In this document: piece after piece, positions 2,789 through 53,000 of the stretch
Numbering within the stretch: position 1 is the first letter of the stretch
How the letters are laid out: the number at the start of each line of letters is the position of its first letter
Assembly (NCBI GenBank): GCA_964035545.1
Contig: OZ037766.1
Location: 4,268,722 to 4,332,721 of the forward strand
Source of the DNA: Bugula neritina
Lineage: Eukaryota > Animalia > Bryozoa
Length of the DNA stretch: 64,000 bases
Reading direction: 5' to 3'
The notes under the pieces: model-generated
The model's input: only the letters and a program-made list of their open reading frames with translations
What the model was told of the DNA's origin: nothing
Databases searched by the model: none
Position numbers and translations under genes: made by a program

Positions 2789-4070
2789 CTAACTAAGTGC
2801 TGTCCTGCTTGATTGTTGCTTCACGGAATATGTTTGCAAATCCTCTGCTACTGCACAGTTAGGTCCAAAAGTCAGTTTAGCTTGTTCAAGTAAAGAATAT
2901 ATTGTTTTTTCTTGTTGGCTTCGTGACTCGGTGTATCGTTGACTAAAATGAGTTAGATATAACAGCTTAGCATTAGCCTGCAGTGCGAATTCAGCTGCCA
3001 TCTCAGGGGTGGAGTGACCTCTCTCAATAGCCTGATCTTTTAGCTCATTTTCCAAAGTTGCTTCATGAATATACACATCTGCATTCTGGGCTAAATAAGA
3101 AATATGTGATGAGTTCATAGAATCGCCGCAGATCACCACTTTTCTACCAGGTTGGTCATCTCCTAAGACATCCTTTAATGTAATTTGCTGGCCACTTGGT
3201 GAGCTAACTGCGTTACCATTTCTAAGTAATTTACAAACAGGTCCTGGCTCAATTCCAAATGATCTTAGTTTGTCTACATTTAAATTTCCTGGAATTGTTT
3301 GCTCTTGAATTATAAATGCAAATGAAGCTATTCGATGTTGGAGTTTTCCAGCTGTGACTGTTAATGGCCCTTCAAAAATTGGCCATTTTGGAACTCCATT
3401 TACCATCTCAGCTTCAATCCTTTCACCCTCATCTTCACAAGGATGCAGTTTTAGGTGGTCATCCTCTTCAAAGTTGCACATGCCATCTTCCTCTCCTCGC
3501 ATATCAACTGTTGGTACCAACTCTATTACTTTAAACCTATAAGCCAAATTAGCACGGCTCAAGCCAAGGGTAACTCGCAAGTACTTTGCTAAGCCAAGTG
3601 GCCCATAAATAAGAATAGGCGCATCTCGTTGGTTAGTCTGACCAATAGTACACATTAAGCCGCTGATGCCATACAGATGGTCTCCATGTAAATGAGTTAT
3701 AAATATTCTGTTGACTTTACCAGCTTTCAAACTACTTTTCATTAGTTGAATTTGAGTCCCTTCACCACAGTCAAACATACACAGATCATTTTCATACCTA
3801 GCAAATGAAAAAAGTTCTGTTGTAACCTTAACAATAGATGTGAAATAGTTTAATAAAAAAACTGTGCTAATCCTAACCATTTGACAGCGTTGTGTTTATG
3901 TAGAATATTGTGAAACAAAAAACATGTGCGAACACAAAATGTATACCATCAATCTCAGAAAGCATGTTCATGCATTTTGCCTACCTTAAAACAATACTTG
4001 AAGCAGCCTTTTTTGGAGTTGGATTGGCAGACGCAGTGCCCAGAAACGTTATTTCCATCATCGGTGCCAT
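2789..4070 (-). CDS. ELAC1: Zinc phosphodiesterase ELAC1 / short-form RNase Z (2 coding exons)
   Basis: Exon 1 4070(or 4061/4058)-3985 encodes MMEITFLGTASANPTPKKAASSIVL. Exon 2 3797-2789 carries DCGEGTQ, THLHGDH, the GP exosite (GIEPGP), GDS, HEAT, HST and THFSQRY motifs. The ORF-track start at 3880 is intronic. Confidence 0.95.
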
Positions 4071-7148: not shown

Positions 7149-10100
7149 ATGACTGGCATTATTCAAACATCTATACAGAATGATCCCACTCATCTAAAAG
7201 TAAAGCCTTCGCACACCGGCGCTCCTAAAACATGTGATATTGGAAGTTCAGTACTAGAACACCACTCTCGCAAAGTTTTTTACATCCAAGCGGATCACCA
7301 AGATATTGTTACACAAATTCCACCTGAAACTTTCTATAAGCTCAAACTAACACAACTAACTATTGTCAACAATGAAATTTCATCCATCCCCAATGAGATA
7401 TCCCATTTGCAAAACTTGCAACATTTAATTTTAGCCAACAACAAAATTGAAAAAATAAATGCCATTGTTTTCACTTTACCTCAGCTCACAGTTATCGATT
7501 TCAGTGGAAACAAACTCCAATGTGTTCCTGAAGAACTTGCTCAATTGGGCAAAACTTTACAGCAGTTGTATTTAAATGGAAACAACATCGCAGAGGTTAC
7601 AAGCAACATTGGAAATTTGGTAGAATTGCAGATATTGGGTCTTAATGATAACCTGATAAGTGAATTACCAGACGAAATATCAAATTGTCAAAACCTTAGA
7701 GAGCTTGGATTAGAGCGAAATCAACTAAAGTTTCTTAATGGTGAAATATGCAGAATAGAGTCTTTGAAGAAGCTTGGTCTTTCAGGCAACATGATGACCA
7801 ACTTGCCTAAGACCTTGGTTAACCTGACTGAGTTAGAGCTCCTGCTGATAGAAGACAATCAGTTTGATTTTGTTCCCATTGAGTTGTTCAGTCTGATGAA
7901 TTTAAGAGAGTTGTCTCTTGCTGGCAATTTTCTCACCAGTATTCAACCAGAGATAGGTAACTTGAAGCAACTCACATCTCTTAACCTTCAAGATAATAAT
8001 TTGCAGACGTTGCCAGAAGAGTTGTGGAAACTGGTAACTCTGGTAACTCTGTCACTTTCTGGAAACAGCCTAGGAAAACTTTCTCCTAGCGTCAGTAAGT
8101 TTTTGGTGTAAATGAAGTTTATTGTATAGATAGATATGTTTATAATAATTAGTTGATTGTGTTCTTTGCTTCATAAATGACAAACTCAATTAAATTAAAT
8201 CTAGAAGTGAATTGGATTTTCAAGTTAAAATGTAGAATACTTTTTATTATAGTTGTTACAGCTTTGTGATTACAATAAATGATAGCGTTTCTAATTTTTC
8301 TTGACCGACTATATTGAAGCAATAAAACCTAGCAGTAAAATTTGATGAAGTTAGTTTAGAATATTTATTATTTCATAAATAATTACACTATTGCCGACAA
8401 TATTCATAGAATTATTTGTATATAAATTGAGTAATTATTGAAATTGGTTTGGCCTTTCTTTAAGTGTGTAAATTTAGCTTTTCTTTGAAAAGGAAAACTT
8501 GCATGATTCCTCAAATAAAAGTTAGAAGTTCTATAGTTGATTACTCCAGGCTGATAACCTTGTTTTATTCAAAATGTTCAATTAAATTAATTTAGGAATT
8601 TCATTAGACTGCTAATAAATGCAGGTTGTTGTTCTTTTCAAATGATGTGATTCCAATTTCTACCAATATATCAAAAGGAATTTTATTAAGCGTATATTAA
8701 TCTTGAGCATGCATACTAGTAGCATTAAACTGTTTTTGTAGTTAAAGTATTTTTAAATAGGGATTTTTATTGTTATTAATTAATAGTTCTAGCTTAATTT
8801 GTTGTGCAAGCTATCTACATTTTACATTGCTTGCAGGTATATAGGCTTTAAACACCTATAATTTTTAGATTTTCATTCTGCTAAATGCTAAGTCTTTCAC
8901 ACATAAAAATGGACTTAAAATCGCAACAACCCTGTTTTTTAAACATGAACCTTGTATTTAACATTCATATTACAATTTAAATGATATTTCTTCTCTCCCC
9001 TTGACTATTATAGTTTTGATATGAAAGAATATTTTGCAGGTGAGCTCTATGATTTGGAGTCGTTGTACCTGTCACATAACCAGCTGGAAGCATTGCCCGA
9101 TGAGCTATCACTCTGTACGAACCTGGAAGTGGTTAGCTTGGCCCACAACCAGTTGACGAAACTTCCCGTGGAGATGATTAACTTACGTAGGTGTAATATG
9201 CAGCCTAAATTCTGCCTTTAACATAGGCTGTATAATAGGTGTAATCTGTGGAATAATAGACTGTAAGAGAGATGCAGTCTGTGGAATAATAGGCTGTATG
9301 ATAGATGTAATCTGTGGAATAATAGGCTGTATGATAGATGTAATCTGTGGAATAATAGGCTGTATGATAGATGTAATCTGTGGAATAATAAACCGTATGA
9401 TAGATGTAATCTGTGGAATAATAGACCGTATAATAGATGAAATTTGTGGAATATTTTGAAGTAAAAAGTTAGAATGTGTTATGTAATAGCAAATAATAAT
9501 CAGATTATGCTACATGATGGAAGGTATAATGCATGCAGCAAGTAACCTTCTATCTAGTGTCAACTGGTAATTGTATAATGATACAGACAGGCAGTAATAT
9601 ACATCTCATATATAAGTGCTTCTACATGTTGTGTGTTTTTCCTTCAAAATAATACTAAATCAATATCAATAACATAATATAATATAAAATATATTATTTT
9701 TCAGGAAAACTGAGAGAGCTGGACTTGAGCTACAATAAGTTTGTAAACATTCCTGACTTTGTGTCACTACAAGCTAACTTGGGGTCCTTGAATATGGAGC
9801 AGAACGAACTGGTGCATGTCGGACCCGAGTTTTCTACTCTTAAAAGACTGCAGACTCTCAATCTATCAAAAGTAAATCACATCTACTTGTTGTAGACTTA
9901 CACTTTAATATAGTGTATAGATATGATACTTATGATAAACATAAACTTTGTTTTAACATTATATTATAGAGTATATAATTATGTAATCAAATACAATATA
10001 TTATTATATTTTATAAATTATTGTAAGTTCTTCTATTTTTAGAAAGCAGACTGTTTTTCAGACGCCAATGCTTGTCCTGACTATAGCACATTTGCACCAT

Positions 10101-13100
10101 TTTGTATCACTGTAGACTATTGCCATATATTTTTCTAATATAAACTGGCTTGAAGCTTCTCTGTTGTCTTAAATTTTGTGTTTGTTTTTGTTCTGTAGAA
10201 CAAAATAACTAGCTTACCACAAGCTGTTTGTCAGATGATTGGTGTAGAGTTACTTGATGTTTCCCACAACCAGCTAGCGATGCTGCCTGAGGACATGAGT
10301 GGCCTCAGCAAATTTCGGTTCGTATGTTTACTAACCATAGATTTAGCTCCTAGCTAGTTATGAATGTTTCTTGTTTGAATTGGCAATTGTAGAGTTACTC
10401 AGTTCTGAATTTTGTTACGGTGAATAATACAGACTGTTGACTTTAGTTTCATGTGAATTTGTAAATGCAAAGTTACATAGTTCCAACTTTTGTTTCAAAT
10501 TGAAATGCATTTTATACGGATTTTCTTTTTAAATCTCAAAGCCTTTCAAAACATTTAAATGCTATTTTTTATTGTTTTTTTAATGGGTTTTCTTTTGTTT
10601 ATTTTTTACTTCTTAACTTTTATATTGTAAACTCCCAAGCCTTTCTCCATTCTCTATTCAAGTAATGGCTTAACACTATTACTGATTTGACTTTGTTGAG
10701 ACAGCATTAGTTGTGAGTCTCTATTTACTCTACAATATCAGCAGTGAACTTCTTTTTTTTAGTCAGTTTCAAGGACACCACAACAAGTTTTCCAGTTTTC
10801 CTCCAGTCTTGTGTGACATTGCATCTCTAGAGGAAGTGAACCTCTCTAACAACGGTGTTGTCACGGTTACGGCTGAAGTTGCAAATCTATCCAACCTAAC
10901 CAAACTCAACTTGAACAACAATCAATTTGAAGAGTTTCCATATTCGGTAAAAAAGATCAACTTTTGAATTTAATTTCATATCTGTACTCAGCCCTATAAA
11001 TATTCTAGTATGTCCTGCAGCTGTATGCATTTTGTAAATTGTAGTGTAGAAGCATATCTTAGTATTCACTCTTAGAAATGTATCTGTTACGTTTTTGTTC
11101 TGCTTAATTCCTAGATACTCTAAATTGTCAGTGTCGAAGTTATTTCCACTGTCCACTCATATTTTTTAAGGTGTAAACCCCACCCACACTGTAAACATAC
11201 ATAGCAGAAATTGAGCATCTAGAATTTTAGCTGAATATAGTTATAGCAAAAAATAAAGCCAGTCTTTCAACACACCATGTGAAAATAAAGTATGCAGCTG
11301 TTTATTGTTGCTTTTTTATCAGTTATTCTCTCAATAATATTATAGTTGCTTAACTTTAATTATGGCACCATTTACAGTCATAACCATAAAAGCTTAAATT
11401 TAAATCCACACAACTTTTTACTTGAAAGAATAAAATTGCCATGGTAATGTTCACCAGTTACGTTTACCTGCCAAGCATAAACTAAATTCATTCACTTTAG
11501 TCACTGTGTGTCAAACCTTTAGTGTTTCTACTGATTTCTTACAGCTATTTATGCTGTAATATGTATAATTCATACTTGCGGACGACACAAAATCAAATGA
11601 TTTCAGTATTATAGCAACATGATATATGATAGAATTGTATCCAACACATGTTGTTAGGTGTGCCAAATACCCAGCTTGGATATACTCCACATGAAGCAAA
11701 AGAAAGGCAGACGTATTGAGAACCTTCCAGAAGAAGATTTGGCAGCTCTACCAGTATCTCAGCTGTACTTGAGTCACAACAGCATCTCCTTACTTCCTTC
11801 TCAGATAGCTGACATGCCTAACCTCAAGGCCCTCTATCTCAATGACAACATTGTAGAACAACTACCTGCAGAGTTATGTCAGATGAGGAGTTTACAGGTG
11901 CTTTCAGTTTTCTCCAAGCACCATATTTTATGTTACTTTATATACATAGCTAGGGTTTTGTATTCTTGCTAAAATAATAAGATGACATGGGCTATTAGAC
12001 TTTAGCATTAGTATAATAATTTTCTTGCTTATTTTCTATGGCTTAAAACTGTAATGCTTATGCCATGAATCTGTATATTTATTATGTTTATAAAGATGTG
12101 CTTCACCACTAAAAAGCTTAAGTGAAGAAGTTTGCTATGTGCACACTACAATGTAGTATTACACTAAATTATTTATACATAACCAATGTTGCCATTATAA
12201 CTGTTCCAGTTGTCCAATAACTGAGTCTACATTTCAATACATGGGTAGACAACTTCTAATCATTGTAGTTTTTAATCTTAAGTTAATGTGAGTAATTTTA
12301 TTTTTAGTGTTCAATAAGACTTATATAAAGAGGTTTTCAAAAAAACTTGATTATATATTTTTCTGTTATATATGGAGTCTAGATTGATTTCTTTCTTCAT
12401 TCTGTGTTATATAGATTCTATGCAACTCCAGTTTTCTCATCACAGTATTTATATTCTTTTAGATACTTCACTTGCATGACAATAAGCTAGAAGCTCTACC
12501 AAATGGAATTGATGAGTTGACCTCTCTCACTGACCTCCGTCTCCATGGCAACCCCTTGAAAACTCCGCCTCTAGAAGTCTGCATTGGAGGTGTACTTCAA
12601 CCAATCGGATTGTTTCTCACCACACATGCTAGCAGACAAGGTAATATCTTAAGATACTATTTTGACATTTCAGGCTTGAAAAATATCTTGTTTGTTGACA
12701 TAGACTGTAGCACTAGTGCTAACACTCTAAAGTCTAAGGCATCGCAGTGTTTATAGCTCTGCGTTATGATGTCCCAATTTTGTCGCTCCTTAAAAATTTA
12801 TTAAGCACTTTTGCTTGTAGTGACACTAAGTTTTGGTAAGGTTTGACCAACATTGTTGACATGTTCACTTTAGTTGATGTTATAGTGAAATTATCCTACT
12901 AAAATATCTTGAAAATAATATATCATTTTGAAATTTAATTTTAGGGATGTTTTGTACAAAAGAGTTTTTAATTTTCACTTGAACTCTTGACCAGTCATGG
13001 TTTGAGTTTGAATATACTTATGAATAGTTATGAATTTAGACTTATATCTAATTTGATAAAATCCGTAAACTCACCATAGGAGTGGTACAATTTTGTATTT

Positions 13101-13683
13101 TTGGCCCTTGGTCTTCAATAAAAAAAACATTGACAAACACATTCTGTTTCAGAGATACTGATGGATAAGATGTGTGCTGTGGTGATAGATCTCATTGATA
13201 AAGATGACCTGAGAATGCTGTGGAGGAAGTTCAGATTTGATCATGATGAAATTTATTCCTTGGAGGTAGACTACAAAGGCAAGACTATGGTCAAACCTCG
13301 TGCTGCTGCGACTATGGCCTTATGGTTTGTTTACTGCTGACTTTTTTACTGCTGACTTCAATGCCGAATCCTAATTTGCGTTTTATTATGTAATTTTTTA
13401 ACGCATGTAGTGATGGTTCGAATTATTCTTTTTTTAATACTTTTCATTTAAACTTGTATTACTTGGATTATTGTGAGTTACTTGATAAAATGTAGACTTT
13501 TAGAAATAGTGTGATGATTGATGCAATGATTTGAACTTTGCTATTGCATATTTTAGGCGCAAAAAGAGAGCTTTAACCGCCACCCCTAATGAGTTAGTTC
13601 GAATCCTTCACCTTCTTGGTCTAGAGGAGCTTGAGAAAAAAACCAAATACATTAAACTTTGTGCGGAACGTACTTTACTTTAA
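7149..13683 (+). CDS. LRRD1: Leucine-rich repeat and C-terminal death-domain-like protein (LRRD1-like), 9 coding exons
   Basis: In-frame GT-AG exons 7149-8094, 9040-9186, 9705-9871, 10199-10317, 10763-10946, 11658-11897, 12463-12640, 13153-13324, 13557-13683. More than 20 LxxLxLxxNxL repeats, an LHGNPLKTPPLEVC cap, then a helical death-fold-like tail (DLRMLWRKFRFDHDEIYSLE...ALWRKKRALTATPNELVRILHLLGLEEL). The start codon may lie further upstream. Confidence 0.8.
9224..9452. repeat. 33-bp intronic minisatellite (aggctgtatgatagatgtaatctgtggaataat), ~7 copies
   Basis: Directly visible tandem copies. Confidence 0.9.
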
Positions 13684-14279
13684 GAGTGTCTTCAGTTAGC
13701 AAGACCAAATGCTTGACAAGCTATACAGGTGGTTGAATAACCTGTCACAGGTGGCCACTCATTCGTTGATTGGGAGAATAAGAAATATTAATTTATTTTC
13801 TTGAATTAGGATACTAAAAGTCTATAATTTTGTTTACTTCCTTGTAGATGTTTTCTGTGATCATAAATGTTTATTCTATGTTAGTTTAAGTGCGTAGTTG
13901 CTAATTGCAAAAGCTATCTTCAAACTTTATGGCGTATTTTTGTATTGATTAATCATTATTTTTTGAAAAGCAGATTTGTTTTAGAATTATCAGAGTATAT
14001 TTTATGTTATTTACAATCAGTGCTTGTGTTCATAGTTTTACAATAAGTATGTCTTTTGTTTTAGAGCTTCCAAGAACATAAAATAAAATCCAAGTTACAA
14101 TCTTTTTAATGGTGTCTATTAACACCATCATGCTTGTTTCTATATTAATAAACATATAATCTTTATCTTTATAAATCTGAAGCTATATCAGGGTAGTAAT
14201 TATGCCAAGGCAATAATTGAGTAGTGAAATAATAAATTGAACTCTATTGCTGTTAAACTGTTATAGTTATTCAATCCTG

Positions 14280-15620: not shown

Positions 15621-17550
15621 AATCAGGAAATAGTGGAAAATGAACAGGGAAATGAACAAATAATAAACAAATGCTGAGGAAGGGGGTGTATGCTAACACC
15701 CTTCTACCAGTTCATATATTTTTCATATAGTTTTAAGCAATTAGCTCATTATTGATATTATTATTGATAGTTGAGTAAGAAGAACTATTGCCCTGAAATC
15801 TGTGAATAGCTTATTTCTTTTGACAATGGACAATGAATTAAAACTTCCTTATAGTTATAGTTCAATGGCGCTTGACTGACCTATATAACATGAAGTCATA
15901 TTTTAAAACTTCTAATTTACATATTGGCTATTATTTAGTTCGGTACCAATTCACTATATTCTACGCTCTCTCGTTGGTCACATTGGGTCTAAGACTGCTT
16001 TGAAGAAAGTTAAAGGTAAGTTTTTCATTATTTCAAAAATGAAATTTTTTCTCATAAACAGAATTTCTTCATGCTCCCATTTTGCCATGAGCTAAAGCTT
16101 AGAGGTTATGGGTACTTACTGCTGAAAATTCAAACAAATTTTGATATTTTGTTAGATTTAATGAACTGATGCTATGTAATAACGTAACAAGACTCGCAAG
16201 TTGTTACTATGGTCAGTCAATCACCTACCATTAAAGCAGCTAATATTTGAAAATAGTTGACTCCTATGTCAAGCATGTAGAGTTGGAAGTGCTACAGCTT
16301 TGTAAAGTAATAGGCAACTACTTAGACTGTAAAATCTAAGACAGAGCTGTGTTGTAATTAGGCTTTCTGTCCAGACATCACTAATGACTTTAGGAAATTT
16401 ATACTACAATTTCTTAACACTGAAAACTGCTACTAGGGAGCAAAAAACTAATAATATGTCAAAATTTTTCCAAATAAAATCAGCTGTAAGTAAATAAAGT
16501 TAGGATGTTATCAGACATTCATCGTTACCTAAAAAGTCAGTTTTGTATTTGCACTGCAAACCATTGTTAAATTGAAACGTTGTAGCCATACGTTGAAATT
16601 TACTTCCTAGTTTAGTTAATGTGTGATTCAAATGTATTTTCATCGAATAGTTAACTCTTATAATTTCAGTTGTTGTATTAGAATAAGCCATAGCATTTGC
16701 TCTTATTTTGTGTTACATACATCCATAACAATCCCTCAAGTCCCCTCTGTCTTGTAAACAATAATTTTGTATTTGTTCATCAATAACAAATTTTCAAGTC
16801 CTCTATGTCTTGTAAACAATGCTGAATTATTAAAAGGAAATAGGGATTCATCATGCTAACAGAAGGAACTGCTACTGCCGGTGTCAAGGTCAAAGGCAAG
16901 GCTATTTCAATTTAAACTCAGCAGCTACATAGCTTTTATATTATTTATAGCTTGTAAAGATACTATAGAAAAAACTTTATAGCAATAGCTTAAATATAAA
17001 TTGTCTTTTGGAAAAAGGATGAGTGATGGCAATGTAAGGAAATATCTTTCTTTAACTAGTAAACAATTATTCACACATTTCTTCACTGCACAAACATACA
17101 GTCAGATGATGTTTTCACAAACTCTATGGTTGTTTGTCAGTTGCATGTCATTTTGAGCATCACTATTTCCTGGTTCATGCTATATAGCTCCATACACAAT
17201 TGTTCAAATCCTGATTGCTCGAGTGCATAGTTAGGGAGAGGAATATTTGTCGTATGAGCTATAGCAAACATTTGCAAGGTTGTATCCATGTACGCTAGAG
17301 AATTTTCTGGCATATAAATAATGATGCCTACATAATGTATATGGTTCATCTTTTGACACTGTAAAAGCTACATCATTCTAGCTTTGCAATAGAATTAGCA
17401 ATAAGAACTAGTAGTGGAACGGCCGCAAACCATGGCCCAGATGAAGGGCAGTCCCTAAGCCTAGTCTAGTGTAAATAAAAACTTTTATAATCATAACTGC
17501 ATTGATGGGAAAATATAAAATATGTTACAAATGTAATCCACTAATTTTAG

Positions 17551-17914
17551 ATGTTACCCGAAAAGAATAAGTTTAAGTGTATAACTAAGAAAGTGGTGGA
17601 ATTTCTGGGAGAGAGTGAGGGACTACTTCCTAATGAAAATCTCTGTGACTCAGGAGAACTAAAACTGAAGGCTTTGGTAGAAATGAAAAGGAAAAAACAC
17701 TTCTTCCAGAAAGCCAAGTACTTCCCAAAAGACTTGCTACTGGATGATTTTTTTAAAGAGGAAAATCCAAATAAGGTAATAAATTACAGCTATTGTAATA
17801 AAATATAGCCTACGCTATATTATATATATTATATAGAGCCTCTCTATATATATATAAATATATATATATAGCCTCTATATATTATTACATAGAGCCTCTC
17901 TATATATATATAGC

Positions 17915-18004
<90 letters not shown>

Positions 18005-42300: not shown

Positions 42301-43674
42301 GGCTGTCTTTACAACGCTGGTGACTACACACAGTGCATTCATGTCACTCTCACACATCTGTTTCAGCAGCGTGTGACTCATGTCCAGCTTGCTACAATTG
42401 TTAAAATATACTCTTTACGATAAATATTCACAAAATAAATACAAATCCAACTTTTCAAACTCATCTTACATAATATTTCTATTTTATTACTGCCTTAACA
42501 AGTTAGTATTGGCTAATGAGTTTTTATAATATTTAGAACAAAATCATGTTGAAATAAATTTAAAATGACTTGTAATGGCCTTAAAAGAACACTTTTCTAA
42601 AGCTCTATCATTGTGCTTTATGATTGGTAGTTAGAATCTTTACATTTTATAATCATGAGATACATGGCTGATTTGTAAGAAATTGGAATATTTTTACAAA
42701 CAGCGTATTAAATAATTTTATTTGCTAAAATATTATTATATATCTTGTACAAAGAAGTAGCTTAGTTCTACTCAATAGATATTCAGTTGGCTCACCTGCT
42801 TTTGAATTGGTTAATTAGTGATTGTTTGCAAACTTTTGATCTGTGTATTGGTCCCAGATTTGCTGCTAGTGATTTATTTCCCTTGACTGACATGTTCACC
42901 TGAAATACTTTGCTAGCCTCCACATCAACGTATCCATTTCCACTAAGATTCTCAAAATATACCAAGCTGCCAAGCGGTTCATTGTGTGAAATTTTCAACT
43001 GCAAGAAGATTATTATAAAAATTCACCATCATGAGAGCTACTCCATGTTCAAATATAAATATTTTAGAATGATTTAAACTTTAGAGTGTAGGGGGGAGCG
43101 TTTCTAGCACCAAATATTTATTAATTATGATATTTTAGACCTCAGATAACACTGTTCACTTTTAATTACTCTTCCACCAACCTCCATCTTAGGAAATCTC
43201 TACTTTCTGTACCTCCTCTACAGAATTTCTCATATTATAAGGCTCACAGCACACAGTCAATACTCGCTTGTTGTGAGCATAAATTTGATCTAAATTTAAC
43301 CAACTAGGAATCTAATGTCTAGGCGTAGATAAGAAAGTCATGCTCCCTGATATCTATACCCATGACATATTTATAAATTTTATTATACTTTATAAATGAT
43401 ATGTTATAAGTTCTAGTATACAAAATATAATGATATAATTATATCATATATAGCAGTAATTTATCACCTTATTTAGATCTTGCTCTTCCGAAACATGATA
43501 CAGTAGAAAATCTATTGGGTAGTACTTGTCGCTCTGGAAGAAGTATTTTTTCTTCTTCCTTTCTACCAAAGCCATCAGTTGTAGTTTTTCTGATTCATAG
43601 TGATTTTCATTAGGAAATAGTCCATCGCTTTCTCCCAAAAATTCCACCACTTTCTTAGTTACACACTTAAACAT
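39302..43674 (-). CDS. Gasdermin (GSDME/PJVK-like), copy B, ~487 aa, 9 coding exons
   Basis: Exons 43674-43468, 42998-42796, 42391-42247, 41882-41753, 41354-41286, 41153-41064, 40467-40411, 40113-39824, 39574-39302; GT-AG and phase-compatible. Starts [22 protein letters not shown]...KLQLMALVERKKKKYFFQ and contains IPEGAVLAYEVVELQI and KGGF. Confidence 0.88.
40752..41063 (-). repeat. 22-bp minisatellite, ~14 copies, many carrying AG|GTGAGT (gasdermin B linker intron)
   Basis: Plus-strand unit cactcacctatgtattatacta; the array abuts the exon 6 donor at 41063. Confidence 0.92.
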
Positions 43675-44269
43675 CTTCCTGGGGTAAAATCTAAAATTAT
43701 TGAATGATATTTGTAACATATATATAAATTTTATATTTTCACAACCGTATGATTGTGATCTTGCTCATATACATTACATATGCATTATCATTTATATACC
43801 AGAATTCGGTCAAGAACATGGATAAGACCCTTTCAAATTTCTGTTATAGCTTATACAACAAATATTCCTCTCCCTAACTATGTGCTAAAGCAATCACAAA
43901 CCTAGCCAACAATAGTTTGAACTTGAGTATGAAGCTATAGCATGAACCAGGAAATAGTAACATTTTTGAAGGGTTTATAGAAGGTAAATAGTGATTCTCA
44001 CAATGACATGCAACTGACAACCATAGAGTTTGTGGAAACATTATCTGACTGTATGTTTGTGAAGTGTGGAAATGTGTGAATAATTGTTTACTAGTAGCCA
44101 GCTGAAAGATATTTCCTTACACTATACAAGCACTTTTATATATTCTTATTTCAAAAAATCACTCACATTTAGGGCTATTGACTCAGGCTTATTCATGGCA
44201 CGTTCAGAGGTTTGCCTGGTATCTTTATAAACAGTTATAAATACTGTAAAGGCTGGTAGAGTTTAGAAT

Positions 44270-45045
44270 CACGGGCTTTCCATGTACCGATCTCAGATCG
44301 ATCTCGCTGAGATCGATCTGAGAAATGTGCTCAGATCGATTGTTTTTCCATGAGAGTGACAGATCGATCTAGCGAAGTTGCCTCCTCTTAAGTGAAGGAT
44401 ACTTTGAAAGTATAATTTGTTCACCTATTTGAGTGATTAAAGCTACTACTGTTGAAAACAAGGTGGTCGTAGTCTAAAATTTTATCCCAGCTATAAAGTA
44501 TACGCAGCAAAGCTTTCAGTGTATGGTAATTTGGCCAAATTAAAATAATTAATTTTAACTTTTTAGCTAGACAGCTTATATAAAATTATTGGCTGTCTTG
44601 CAGATTAATAATAAACTTACAAGACTGTTAGGCTTAAAATTACAAAGAAAATAGCTAATGAAACTAAGTTTTAATAGTCATTTAAATTCGATTTAAATTC
44701 TCCTATTTTTTTACCTTCTACTGCATATAATTGAGTTTTCTAAATCATTGTACTTAAAGTCAAAGTTTTGGCATCTGAAAAGGTGGCCATCATAATTATT
44801 TAATACTTTGCTTAGTAATTATCACTAAGTTATCATTTTTATTAGCAGACAACATTGTAGCGCGCAGTCTTTTTCTACTTCTCAGATCGATCTGGCGTCT
44901 TTCCATGGTCTTATTGACATGAGATCGATCTGAGTTCGAGCTCTACAGACCGACCAGCTCAGAACGACTGAGATCGATCTTTGCCGTCTTTCCATGGATC
45001 GATCTCGCTGAGATCGATCTGAGATCGGTACATGGAAAGCCGGTG
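44270..45045. mobile_element. Non-autonomous DNA transposon with long TIRs (cac(g/c)ggctttccatgtaccgatctcagatcgatctc), AAT target duplication and AGATCGATCT subterminal palindromes
   Basis: TIRs over 30 bp and aat on both flanks; the paralogous site near 16908 is empty. Confidence 0.9.
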
Positions 45046-45116
45046 AATGAAATAGCCTACTCTTTGACCTTTGTACTTTTTATAGACACAGGCAGTAACA
45101 GTTTCTTCTGTTAGCA

Positions 45117-45439
45117 CTGGGCTGTCAAACAGGCAGCCTCAGGGCGGGATGTGACTACCAGATTACATTTATGGCATTACACTGATTACAGTATGGCATT
45201 ACAAAAAAACTATTTTGCACGCATTACAGTAAAAAACCCTTTTAAATGCCTTATTTATATACATTCTATAAAACCTGCAACCTGCGGTAACTACTGGGAC
45301 TTCATTGTGTAATGATTCATAGGAATTTGGAATGAAGTAATTTAAAAAATACTGACGCTGCTAAAGTTTAAAATGTGGCCTTCACCACCAGAATATTCCC
45401 TTTCAGTGACCCTCAGTCTGAAAAGGTTGGACACCCCTG
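45117..45439 (+). mobile_element. hAT-type MITE, 8-bp TSD tgttagca
   Basis: Ends ctgggctgtcaaac...gttggacacccctg. The TSD is perfect and occurs once at the empty paralogous site (16854-16861). Confidence 0.92.
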
Positions 45440-46944
45440 TGTTAGCATGATGAATCCCTTAATAATTCAGTATTGTTTACAAGACAAAGAGGGGATTTGA
45501 GAGTATTTTACTCATGTATGTATCACAAAATCAGAGCAAACACCATTGAACTATAACTTATAGTTTCAGTTCAGTGGCAAACACTATGGTGAAATTTTAG
45601 CAATGAGCTCTTCAATAGAAATTTCACTTGAATTATATTTTAACTGACCGAGGAACAAATGATCAACATATGGCTACAACTTCCTAAGTAGTTCGCAGTT
45701 CAAGACCTAAACATGCAGCTGATTTCATTAGTAAAACATTCCAAATAGTGCTAATTTATTATCTGTGGATATTGTAGTATACATTTCCTAAAATAATCAG
45801 TGATACCTGGAAAGAAAACCTAATCACAACACAGCTGTGACTTAGAGGTTGAAGCTTTTACAGTCTAATTGCATGGTTGCTTATTACTTTAAAAAGCTGT
45901 AGCACTTGTAACTCTTATACATGTTTGACATAGAAGCCAACCATTTTTAAATTTCAGCTGTTTTAGTAGTAGGGGATTAACTAACTAGTAAAAGCCTGAA
46001 AGGTTGTGAATCTTGTTATGTTATTACAGCTGTTGGGATCAGTACACTTAATCCAACAAACATAAAACTTTGCTTAAATTGTCAGCAGAATTGATAAGTA
46101 TTAGTATAACCTCTAACTCTAAGTCTAAGTATATAAGTATAAGTCTAAGCTCCAGTTTATGGTAAAATATGAGCACACAGCAATTCTGTTATGAGAAGAA
46201 CATTTCATATTGGGCAAAATTTAAACTTACCTCTAAATCTCTTCAACGTAGTCTTAGACCCGATGTGACCAACAAGACAACCTAGAATATAATGAACTGG
46301 TAACCAGCTAAACAACAGTTGATATCCGTGTTAACGTGTTGACATTTGACCTCATATATAGGTCATTCAAACGTCAAGTCTAGTATAGCTACCAGGCACC
46401 ATGTCAAAACAAATATGCTATTCACAGCTTTCAGGACAAATAGTTCCTGTTGTGCAATCTATCAATGATAATGAGCCAATTGCCTAAAACTATATGCAAA
46501 ATATATGAGCTGGCAGAAAGGGTGTTAGCATACAGCCCCTCCTCAATAAAATTTGTTGATGGCAGTCAGATTTACAGCATGCTGCATGCATATGGCTCAG
46601 TTGAAAATGAAAATTGACATCATCCTATTGTTACTATAATAAACACTGTTTACTTTTGTGAGACTTTATTAGTTTTGTTGAATGGTAGCAGAACAGCGGG
46701 ACTTAACTTAAGAAAATATTGTTTAAACTTCACATCCTTGATATCCAGGTTTCTGTTATTTTTCCCTGCAGACTTTTGAATGAAAGTAACAGCACACAAC
46801 TTCCGGCAAGTTGAGTTGAAACTGAACCTGTATTGACCTAGTTATTGCAACACATGGTATTATTGTGGTGGTACCTTGTAATTTCAACTCTACAATTTTC
46901 TACAGCCAGTCATGCTTACTTCCTGGTAGTACCTGCTGCATATG

Positions 46945-47745: not shown

Positions 47746-48169
47746 TTAAATACATTTTACATATGAAGCTGTGCTACTTGATATCTTGCGACTATATAAT
47801 AGGATAACAAGATTTATATTATTTACATGTTTTGCAAATATTATACAACCGGTGCAAAGTTTTGTGACATTTACATTTTTTTATTAGTCATGCAGTTATG
47901 TTTCTCTTCTGCGATAGTAGTGCAACCCCATTCCCAAATGAATGTAGTGTCTAAACATTAATTTATACTAATATTAACATTACATTTGTGTAGCTCAGTT
48001 TAAGTAGCAATAATTTGTGTATAATACCTGCATAAACGTGTTTTCTTCGTGTTTCGGCATCACATGTGTTGATTGAGACACTCTTCAGGCTTATTATAAT
48101 ATACTATTCAGCCAACATAGATTGGTAGCTACTTTTAGAAATTTATAAATGCTTTCAGATGCTCTACAA

Positions 48170-48507
48170 CAGGAGTATCCAACCTTTTCAGAGTGAGGGC
48201 CACTGAAATGAAATATTTCATGGGAAGGGCTACATTGTGAAATTAAGCTTGGGCTGGGGGTCACAGCATCAGCAATTTTAAATTGCTTTATTCCAAATTC
48301 CTCTGAATCATTACACAATGAAGTCAAATAATAACTGCAGGCTGCATGTTTTTAGTATGTATAAAAATAAGAAATTTAAAAGGTGGTTTTCCCACTCTAA
48401 TTCATATACCTGTGCAAAACAATTTTATTTGTTATGCCTTTGAGAGCCACACAAATGTAGACTGAGTACCACATCTGGCCTTAAGAACCGCCTGTTGGGC
48501 AGCCCTG
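48170..48507 (-). mobile_element. hAT-type MITE (same family as 45117), TSD ctctacaa
   Basis: caggagtatccaac...gttgggcagccctg with a perfect 8-bp TSD. Confidence 0.9.
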
Positions 48508-50010: not shown

Positions 50011-53000
50011 CTAACTTTCATTCTCTACAAGCTTGTCAAGGGTTTCAAAATCTGGTGCTTCGTTAGCATTGGGATCCACAACAGCGGCTTTGTTGACATT
50101 CCCTGTAAAGGGCCCGTTCCCATTGTGGTTCGAGCCAACATTTACATTTCCTACATTTCCATGTCCATTGACTGCATTCCCGTTTCCACTTCCTGCATTT
50201 CCATTTCCATTGACTGCATTCCCATTTCCATTGGCCACATTTCCATTGTTTTTATTTCCATTGGCCACATTTCCATTGCCGATATTGCCATTGCCGATAT
50301 TGCCATTGCCGATATTGCCATTGCCGATATTTCCATTATGACCAAACCAGATTGGGCGAGGATAAAGGAAGTTGCAGTAAACTCGACATAGGCCACTGCC
50401 GTAGCTGTTGTAGTTACTGTGTCGGTTCAAGCCAATCCTGATGGCCGAGGTGGTTGGTGTCATAAAATTAGGGTGTCCTAAGTTCATGTGGTCATTGCTG
50501 CTACTGCGCATAGAAACTTGACGATTGGTAAGAGTGTAGCGGATCCAACTAAAAATATTGCAACAGTTGAAATTAGACGCGAATGAAATATTTAGCAAGA
50601 TAAAAAAACTTGTAAAACCAACAGAAAATCTGATTTTGTTAATTCTTCGCTATTGAACTAAGTATATCAGCATATATCCAAAAGTTATTTGACACCGACA
50701 CTATTATTGTAAAGACACATTTAATTTGCCTAAAAAATGGAGATGCATATACTAAAAGGTATATTCACTGATTCGAAAGGCCAATATGCATTTAGGAATA
50801 AATACATTGTGTCAAATTAAATTATAAATTGATTGACATGCTTTTTAGACAGTTTTATCTTCAAATATTGTACAAAGTTCAAACAAAACTGTGTATATGC
50901 CTTGGTTAGTCTTACTGAGTTTTAAACTTTCCTATATAATTATTAACAGAAGTGAAGCATTCCCATATAAAGAATAACTGAAACAATTCAATTGTCAACT
51001 GCTCAGTTCAATCATGAACAGTTTAGGATAAACTGCATCACATAAAAACTGAAAAAGACCGTTTAATGGACCAATACCTGTATCTATTGTCGTCAGGATG
51101 AGAATGGACGTTCTTCCAAAACATGTTGTTGGAGTTGTAAGATCCAGAACTCTTAGGGCTAATCACCGCATCCTTGCCAATACCATGGATAGTCGTTGAG
51201 GCTGATGAACTCGCTGTAATATTACAAATTTGTTAATCATTTTGAAATCTATTGTCAAGTCAGCTAAATGAAAGCACTATACCTCAAACCTACCAATAAC
51301 ATTTTAATTAGTGCTAAATGACATGAAACGATTAATAAAAATTGTTAATTTTTCCAATATTATACAAGAAGTATTACCTGAAATTTCAAACATTACTAAA
51401 GTACTGATATTGAATATCGATTAGTAATAAGTAGGGATTAGTAATACCAGTTAATTAATATTTTTAATATTATGAAATTTATTGAATAGAATCTCAACTA
51501 TTACTAAGGAACTAGCTGTAGAGCTGGGTATCTGGGAGTTGTCATACTCACAGGATGCTGATTGAGTCAGACTGTACACATAGCGGTGCTGCTCAGGCAC
51601 GTCCATATAGAAGTAGCAGTATAGTCCATCCGCTCCACTTGGAAGTTTGGCACTAATTCTGGATAAACAGACAGACTTGCATCATATATTTGTGTGTACA
51701 GTAATTCAAGTTCAGAGAAAATGTCCAATAAGTACTTGAATGTGAACACAACTTTGAAAAAATGCCAGTCTATACTTTTGTGATAATTATTATATAATCT
51801 GGTTGAAATAACTAACAACTATATTAAATTCTTTTCTACAAATAATTTTTAATGATATATATAATTTAAAAAGTCAGCAGCTTAGGTTTTCAAATTTTTA
51901 ATTTATGCTCTATGCTCTACGCCAGGGCTGTCCAACAGGCGGCCCCAGGGCCAGATGTGGCCCCCAGCTTACATTTAAGTGGCCCTCAAAGGCATAACAA
52001 AATTATTTTTCACACATATATGAATTAGAGTGAAAAACTGTCTTTCAAGTGTCTTACTTATATACATGCTAAAACATGCAGCCTGCAGTAATTATTGAGA
52101 CTTTATTGTGTATAATGATTCATGGTAATTTGGAATAAAGTCATTTGAAAATTACTAATGCTATGGCCCCCAGCTCAAGATAAATTTTACCTTTTTACAA
52201 TGTGGCCCTCACTAGAAATAATCAATTTCAGTGGCCCTCGATTCGAAAAGGTTGGACACCCCTGCTCTACGTCATATTAAAATGCTTAGCTTGGGTAAAA
52301 CTGTTTATATGTCATGCTCTACACAATCTATCAAGTAAGGTATATATAAATATTATTATAAATATAATTGCAAATTGGGTGTGAATAATATAATAATAAA
52401 ATATAATATGCCATTATATATTGTAATAGCTAATCATGATAAAATAAATTTTATTGTCGTGTATTAAAAGCTCACGATAAAATATAATCTACTATATTAC
52501 ATTAATGATCAAATGATCATGGTATATAATATAGTATGATACGATATATTTAATCATCTCGATATAATATAATAGTATTATATTTTTTTACATTATCATA
52601 GTATAGTGTAAATTGCTATATTATCTTTGTAAGTGATTATGATATATAATATAGTACAGTCGATATATCACCATAATAACTTACTGATAATTTTTCTTAC
52701 ACAGGGAATTAGGAGTGTTACTTTCTCCACTCTTCAAGACTGTAAAGTGAGATGAAGTTCTACAGCCTGAGCCAGTGTGGAGATTACAGTAAAGGTAAGC
52801 TTCAGCTGTACCTGTAAAAATAGTAAACCAGTATGTACTTGTAAAGTAGAGGTAAACTTCAGCGGTACCTGTAAAGTGTAAAGGTTGTAAACAAATATAT
52901 TAAACAATCCTGTCTCAGTAATAAATGAGCTCTTTATTTGCATATAACAAAGGATATAACAAGGGAAAACTAGCAGTTCACTTGCTTTAAAATAATAATC

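Follow-up and report, generated by a model that had tools for sequence, protein, structure and literature searches.

The locus described here raises the question of whether two gasdermin genes that lie in opposite arms of a palindrome, each beside a transporter gene of the SLC17 family, form a dedicated two-component system or are duplicates that have begun to diverge. It lies in a stretch of 64,000 nucleotides of Bugula neritina contig OZ037766.1 (hereafter the window; positions are counted from its first letter), and an initial annotation had proposed an undescribed gasdermin pair with different triggers or hetero-oligomeric pores, by analogy with RCD-1-1/RCD-1-2 of Neurospora. Here we argue that gasdermins A and B are paralogues that are diverging in trigger and pore properties, with gene conversion homogenising the rest, a reading to which we assign a probability of roughly 0.6. 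What is new is the lineage and the arrangement, in which the repressor domains of an inverted pair undergo conversion and the pore domains diverge; the pair is not evidence for a new class of cell-death system. Invertebrates have been described as having a single gasdermin orthologue (PMC8742441), and a 2024 survey lists Ectoprocta as being without GSDME (PMC11508797). Our literature search found no paper on bryozoan gasdermins; RefSeq already holds 'pejvakin-like' proteins of Watersipora.

Table 1. Coordinates of the features discussed, in window positions unless a contig (C2, C3, C8) is given.
Feature	Position	Strand	Description
Decayed third copy of the unit	14289..15538	+	direct orientation; self-BLASTN
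Left arm of inverted duplication	15675..30273	+	self-BLASTN
Gasdermin A exon 1, inferred non-coding	15950..16015	+	from sequence; start approximate
Gasdermin A, predicted	17551..23114	+	476 aa; 8 coding exons: 17551-17775, 18613-18818, 19255-19399, 19846-19975, 20366-20434, 20567-20659, 22220-22509, 22842-23114
Second membrane hairpin of A	19340..19915	+	about residues 173-215, exons 4-5
Conversion tract, gasdermin exon 6 and intron 6	20335..20578	+	109 bp identical
A-arm insertion	21248..22030		with dispersed SINE-like repeat
A-arm insertion	24191..24650		separates the convergent 3' ends
SLC17-family transporter A (SLC17A9/VNUT-like)	24898..30013	-	10 coding exons, 448 aa
Longest identical tract	26570..26934		365 bp; read as recent conversion
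Axis	30274..32425		AT-rich; right side with simple-repeat expansion
Right arm of inverted duplication	32426..46545	-	self-BLASTN
SLC17-family transporter B	32685..37919	+	10 coding exons, 448 aa
Gasdermin B, predicted	39302..43674	-	486 aa; 9 coding exons: 43674-43468, 42998-42796, 42391-42247, 41882-41753, 41354-41286, 41153-41064, 40464-40411, 40113-39824, 39574-39302
B-only linker exon	40411..40464	-	phase 1/1; 54 nt (57 with upstream NAG acceptor); encodes LEED294|A
B-arm insertion, MITE-like	44269..45046		50-bp terminal inverted repeats (92%)
B-arm insertion, MITE-like	45119..45440		related copies 48,169-48,507 and 51,923-52,264
Canonical full-length gasdermin	C2:2,048,552-2,053,972		7 coding exons, 453 aa; groups with Watersipora XP_067936027.1
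Four tandem gasdermin N-domain genes	C3:31.529-31.548 Mb		
Three tandem gasdermin N-domain genes	C8:11.674-11.689 Mb		
Fourth full-length gasdermin	C8:12.130-12.134 Mb		short linker exon with DSLD; nearest A/B paralogue in tree

The cassette is a genuine fold-back duplication

Comparison of the window with itself by BLASTN gave inverted matches that nest from 15,675 paired with 46,545 inward to 30,273 paired with 32,426 at 70-95% identity, the outer parts of the arms being 70-83% and the inner parts 85-95% identical. Together with the spliced gene models, this bears out the order GSDM-A> <SLC17A9-A, SLC17A9-B> <GSDM-B in a palindrome of 31 kb, and independent insertions, which had also been pointed out, are present in both arms (Table 1). 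The axis contains a degenerate, AT-rich inner palindrome (30,543-31,464, 68%) whose symmetry runs up to a loop of ~120 bp near 30,990 (about 30,931-31,052). The symmetry score of this core is 117, against at most 29 in 300 shuffles, and the core is single-copy in the 216-Mb assembly. A dispersed repeat lies inside the axis at 30,347-30,478. A foldback transposon was ruled out as the origin of the axis, only the simple repeats of which recur elsewhere.

The initial annotation had allowed for the inversion being a haplotype mis-join. A mis-join would leave homologous flanks, and comparison of the left outer flank, which carries genes for an LYR protein, RNase Z and a leucine-rich repeat (LRR) protein, with the right, which carries a deiodinase-like gene, found no homology between them; the cassette (15,675-46,545) is therefore a genuine fold-back duplication. 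That contig depths are unequal in run X1 and that the axis is spanned by no read in the data examined would favour an assembly artefact in which two divergent haplotypes were fused head to head. Such an artefact is nevertheless exceedingly improbable, because the window is free of gaps (zero N letters), the core of the axis has no second copy and shows degenerate symmetry of its own, the B-type sequence of another sample lies much nearer to B than A does, and both types are present in a second DNA sample. Outside the palindrome, a third copy of the unit is directly oriented and has decayed; it retains gasdermin 3' flank, pieces of SLC17 introns and SLC17 exon 7, and no gasdermin coding exon was found in it.

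A and B look like two-domain gasdermins

The four spliced models (two gasdermins and two transporters), which are predictions from sequence, have GT-AG introns throughout and zero internal stops; they were searched and folded exon by exon, and the joined coding sequences were used for frames, substitution counts and the tree, with an X between the pieces of other family members. A and B are 72% identical overall, and the donor of the first exon of A is conserved in B, at 46,231. The Pfam Gasdermin profile (PF04598) matches exons 2, 4 and 5 in order, over profile positions 1-222, and the top PDB sequence matches of the gasdermin exons are GSDME and GSDMD chains. The N-domain is encoded by four exons with phases 0, 2, 0 and 1, the lengths of which are almost the same in A, in B and in the gasdermin that is canonical for this genome. 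Among named full-length proteins, the closest belong to Watersipora, a bryozoan, and Lingula, a brachiopod; the exon-wise searches yielded no relative of A or B itself in full length.

Searches of the C-terminal exons with Pfam Gasdermin_C, HHalign and Atlas returned nothing significant, BLASTP against the canonical paralogue gave no match, and an AlphaFold model of the last exon alone gave generic helical matches only, with GSDMA3 at rank 23. The last exon aligns in register with the C-terminus of the Watersipora gasdermin P0008 (26% identity over 80 aa, E=4e-5), the predicted model of which matches isolated GSDMD C-domains (TM about 0.69). The C-termini of the Watersipora and Lingula gasdermins are likewise without a Pfam model match. 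The gasdermin identity first proposed thus holds for both genes, given the profile match in the N-domain and the homology of the C-terminal domain to that of Watersipora; of the two profiles put forward for checking it, PF04598 matched and Gasdermin_C did not, as in true lophotrochozoan gasdermins. Judged from sequence and predicted models, A and B both have the normal two-domain layout and look autoinhibited and cleavage-activated.

The ancestral ATG of A was lost through a gain of 2 nt, and its replacement, which is in frame, lies seven codons upstream; the next Met is residue 45. Hairpin 2 of A contains a Gly-run and retains hydrophobic alternation in its first strand, and the basic N-terminal helix is also retained.

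Both frames are kept open and the N-domains diverge

The introns between the N-domain exons differ between A and B at 17% of sites, and frame-breaking indels occur in introns at ~0.035 per base, a rate that the alignment may inflate. If the N-domain exons were neutral, ~24 frameshifts would be expected (about 12 per lineage) and 0 are seen; all coding indels between A and B are in frame, and in a neutral simulation both N-domains were stop-free in 0.7% of runs (P=0.007). The lack of frameshifts and stops against the neutral expectation, together with the in-frame replacement of the start of A, indicates that both copies have been kept translatable. The retention by selection that had been suggested for the locus is thereby supported, with all four frames open and a neutral model of the N-domains that disfavours chance.

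The N-domains of A and B are 62% identical with an omega of 0.98 (0.63-1.64), and the C-domains are 87% identical with an omega of 0.41. When a B-type gasdermin copy from another sample (L006) was used as a third sequence in a GY94 codon model, omega was 1.0 on the A-B path, which runs from A to the B/L006 node, as against 0.335 on the tips leading to B and L006 (p=1.4e-4). The fastest part is hairpin 2, with an omega of about 4.8 on the A-B path (GY94, p=0.007 against 1) in a test that covers 48 codons of three sequences in a region picked after the alignment had been viewed. Relaxed constraint would likewise be compatible with an omega near 1. Intron site patterns (177 A-only, 64 B-only and 72 L006-only) show the duplication to be older than the split between B and L006. 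Outgroup residues favour the state of B over that of A by 31:12, and in the tree A and the B stem receive roughly equal shares of the fast evolution; this division of the path is unreliable, and A cannot be singled out as the fast-evolving copy.

Gene conversion reaches the gasdermins

The arms, which average 91% identity, are dotted with tracts of 107-365 bp in which they match exactly (shuffled maximum 148). In exon 6 and intron 6 of the gasdermins, A equals B and both differ from L006 (Fisher p=7e-4), and the tract stops where the divergent linker exon starts; to explain why intron 6 is nearly identical, conversion was preferred and constraint dropped. The arms are thus shown still to swap sequence by gene conversion. 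The differences in pore domain and linker persist although conversion reaches the gasdermin, which fits selection against homogenisation. The lower divergence near the axis may be partly mechanical, if conversion becomes rarer farther from it.

DNA contigs from three runs (X1-X3), in which no splice joints occur, were compared over window positions 37,750-43,720. Both A-type and B-type contigs are present along the gasdermin in X1, the second DNA sample, the A-type at a depth of 51-64 and the B-type at 82-100, with the remnant at about 109, although depth is not copy number. X2 and X3 have a single gasdermin C-terminal type and differ from the window by ~8-12% over this region under the same organism label, which possibly reflects cryptic species or copy-number variation, and gasdermin A may be polymorphic or limited to some lineages. 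One X1 contig type for the last gasdermin exon has letters that are absent from both window copies and common to X2 and X3, which fits conversion that is still polymorphic.

The linkers suggest different triggers

In the canonical gasdermin a site of caspase-3 type, DVVD251|A, comes right after KGGF, and the Watersipora protein P0008 has DESD|S; comparison of linker motifs found no DxxD site in the linkers of A and B. The linker of B has 56 residues and includes LEED294|A, which agrees well with the known preferences of initiator caspases. In A, ~16 bp near 21,075 take the place of the ~135 bp that hold the exon encoding this motif, and a search of intron 7 of A revealed no other linker exon; the LEED exon region is also carried by runs X2 and X3. 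The linker of A has 39 residues and is basic, and the Asp sites that it offers, close to the first C-terminal helix, are all poor. Caspase-domain matches number 177 genome-wide, many of them clustered on C1, C6 and C7, so alternative upstream proteases are plentiful. The cleavage sites in A and B are motif guesses, from which any protease assignment would follow. Of what the initial annotation had proposed, different triggers are suggested by the diverged linkers, and a dedicated two-gasdermin system is unsupported.

The pair belongs to a lineage-wide gasdermin expansion

The genome contains at least 11 gasdermin genes, namely A, B and at least 9 others, 7 of which lie in tandem arrays (Table 1). 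In the tree, A and B make up a clade on long branches that groups with the genes at C8:12.13 Mb and on C3 and not with the canonical copy, a placement to be read with caution given the long branches. No C-domain was found in the C8:11.68 Mb and C3:31.53-31.55 Mb arrays with profiles that detect the other copies. The A/B pair is one product of this lineage-wide expansion, and with so many further gasdermins, most in tandem, a duplicated pair needs no special partnership.

The transporters are best read as passengers

Matches to MFS_1, VGLUT2/3, sialin and TIGR00894 assign both transporters to the SLC17 family; the subfamily label SLC17A9/VNUT is our assumption by comparison with the human protein, with which the length of 448 aa and the short first loop agree. 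The two copies are 97% identical with an omega of 0.16, and close copies of these genes occur in the assembly only at this cassette. The earlier suggestion that SLC17A9 was merely carried along is upheld, and a passenger under ordinary purifying selection is the best reading. We consider it very improbable that the unit was retained for dosage or for coupled danger signalling, in which SLC17A9 would load vesicles with ATP and gasdermin would lyse the cell. The gasdermin and SLC17 genes were duplicated together twice, as the remnant at 14,289-15,538 indicates, and both SLC17 copies are under purifying selection. Against this, the genes are convergent and so have no shared promoter, the remnant copy has decayed, no SLC17 match lies beside the canonical gasdermin at C2:2.05 Mb, and the SLC17 copies could stay intact by conversion alone.

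Interpretation and alternatives

According to the reading that we prefer, the gasdermin-SLC17A9 neighbourhood would have been duplicated by fold-back before the split from the SRR4020080 lineage, an earlier direct copy having decayed. Conversion keeps the SLC17 genes and gasdermin C-domains alike, with pore domain and linker staying distinct and the gasdermin frames open. Each protein would be a conventional gasdermin of two domains, in which the C-terminal one keeps the molecule inactive until cleavage of the linker frees it to form membrane pores in lytic immune cell death, and the copies would have specialised in trigger and pore properties. For B, the probable cut is at LEED294|A, made by one of the many caspases of this genome that would be of initiator type (LExD); A, without the LEED exon, is probably triggered by a different protease, of the host or of a microbe.

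It is unlikely that B alone holds the function and that A is a spare under relaxed constraint or in slow decay. Such a spare would account for the N-domain omega of about 1.0 on the A-B path, the loss of the ancestral ATG and LEED exon, the Gly-run in hairpin 2, the excess of derived residues in A and its lower depth in X1 (again not copy number); however, it sits poorly with the lack of any stop or frameshift where about 12 frameshifts were expected per lineage, with in-frame indels, a rescued start codon and canonical splice sites, and with A-B differences that survive conversion from B. A may instead resist cleavage or lack lytic activity and serve as a regulator or decoy that joins or damps B pores or absorbs pathogen inhibitors, for which the inhibitory p40 fragment of amphioxus GSDME offers a comparison (PMC10159131). 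The want of a good caspase site in A, the concentration of changes in the membrane hairpin and an N-domain identity that makes compatible interfaces plausible would suit this role, which we hold to be distinctly unlikely, as A keeps the hydrophobic alternation of hairpin 2 and the basic N-terminal helix. An obligate hetero-oligomeric pore or an allorecognition pair, by analogy with RCD-1-1/RCD-1-2, is quite improbable. Two linked and diverged N-domains do remain apart despite conversion, and colonial animals encounter non-self tissue; yet A and B lie in cis and both have a C-domain, X2 and X3 have one C-terminal type and tandem gasdermins are common in this genome, whereas RCD-1 partners are alleles from different individuals that act without repressor or cleavage.

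That A and B are functionally coupled in some form, as mixed pores or as an executor with a regulator or decoy, with A on a non-caspase route, is doubtful. If it were true, conversion would keep the autoinhibitory domains interchangeable and selection would split hairpins and triggers, and a two-paralogue gasdermin module would be new to animals. The pair is a natural experiment in which repressor domains are 87% identical and linkers and membrane hairpins differ, and it allows a direct test of post-duplication divergence in trigger and pore, in parallel to the vertebrate GSDMA-D radiation.

Comparison with known systems

Inverted paralogue pairs under conversion, such as human RHD/RHCE and the Y-chromosome palindromes, show identical patches and divergent islands; in contrast to these, the arms here are only 70-95% identical and have many arm-specific insertions. 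With the GSDME-like proteins of invertebrates (Watersipora subatra XP_067936027.1, Lingula anatina XP_013387688.1, and those of coral, Hydra, oyster and amphioxus) A and B share the four-exon Pfam Gasdermin N-domain, KGGF before the linker and a helical C-terminal domain, at 24-28% identity. They differ in having no DxxD after KGGF, in a long, basic, multi-exon linker, and in forming a multi-copy, long-branch clade apart from the canonical copy.

The vertebrate paralogues (GSDMA-D, GSDMB splice isoforms, fish GSDMEc) are a closer parallel than RCD-1. Here too, linker exons and protease sites account for most of the difference between duplicates: gain and loss of linker exons sets the activating protease in vertebrate gasdermins (PMC8742441), and fish GSDMEc genes are tandem and fast-evolving, with copies that are without a caspase motif (PMC9355259). 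Unlike these, A and B are of independent bryozoan origin, inverted, and under ongoing conversion in the C-terminal domain. RCD-1-1 and RCD-1-2, also two diverged gasdermin N-domains, are alternative alleles without a repressor domain that are activated by heterodimerisation independently of cleavage (PMC11760362, PMC13475620). Two of the three features that define RCD-1-type pairs, absence of a repressor and allelic partners, are not found in A and B, which are paralogues of full length that lie in cis on a single contig and have flanks unrelated to each other. An RCD-1-like pore, as the initial annotation had envisaged, is therefore unsupported.

Other features of the window

The LRR gene of the left flank is multi-exon (7,149-13,684, +) and adjoins the cassette; its end resembles LRRD1 (LRR plus death domain), and the one exon that was tested gave no match to the Pfam death domain. 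The remaining flank genes are the LYR-family gene (935-1,192, +), the single-exon RNase Z gene (2,789-3,880, -) and the iodothyronine-deiodinase-like gene (55,492-59,607, -), and an ORF at 50,011-50,598 (-) has Asn/Gly pentapeptide repeats (GNGNI/GNGNV-like). Both gasdermins have a 22-bp tandem array after the linker exon (20,659-20,837 in A, 40,754-41,066 in B) in which donor-like AG/GTGAGT sites are repeated, 3 in A and 6 in B; read-through into the intron from these arrays is predicted to meet a stop within 8-9 codons, that is, before the C-domain.
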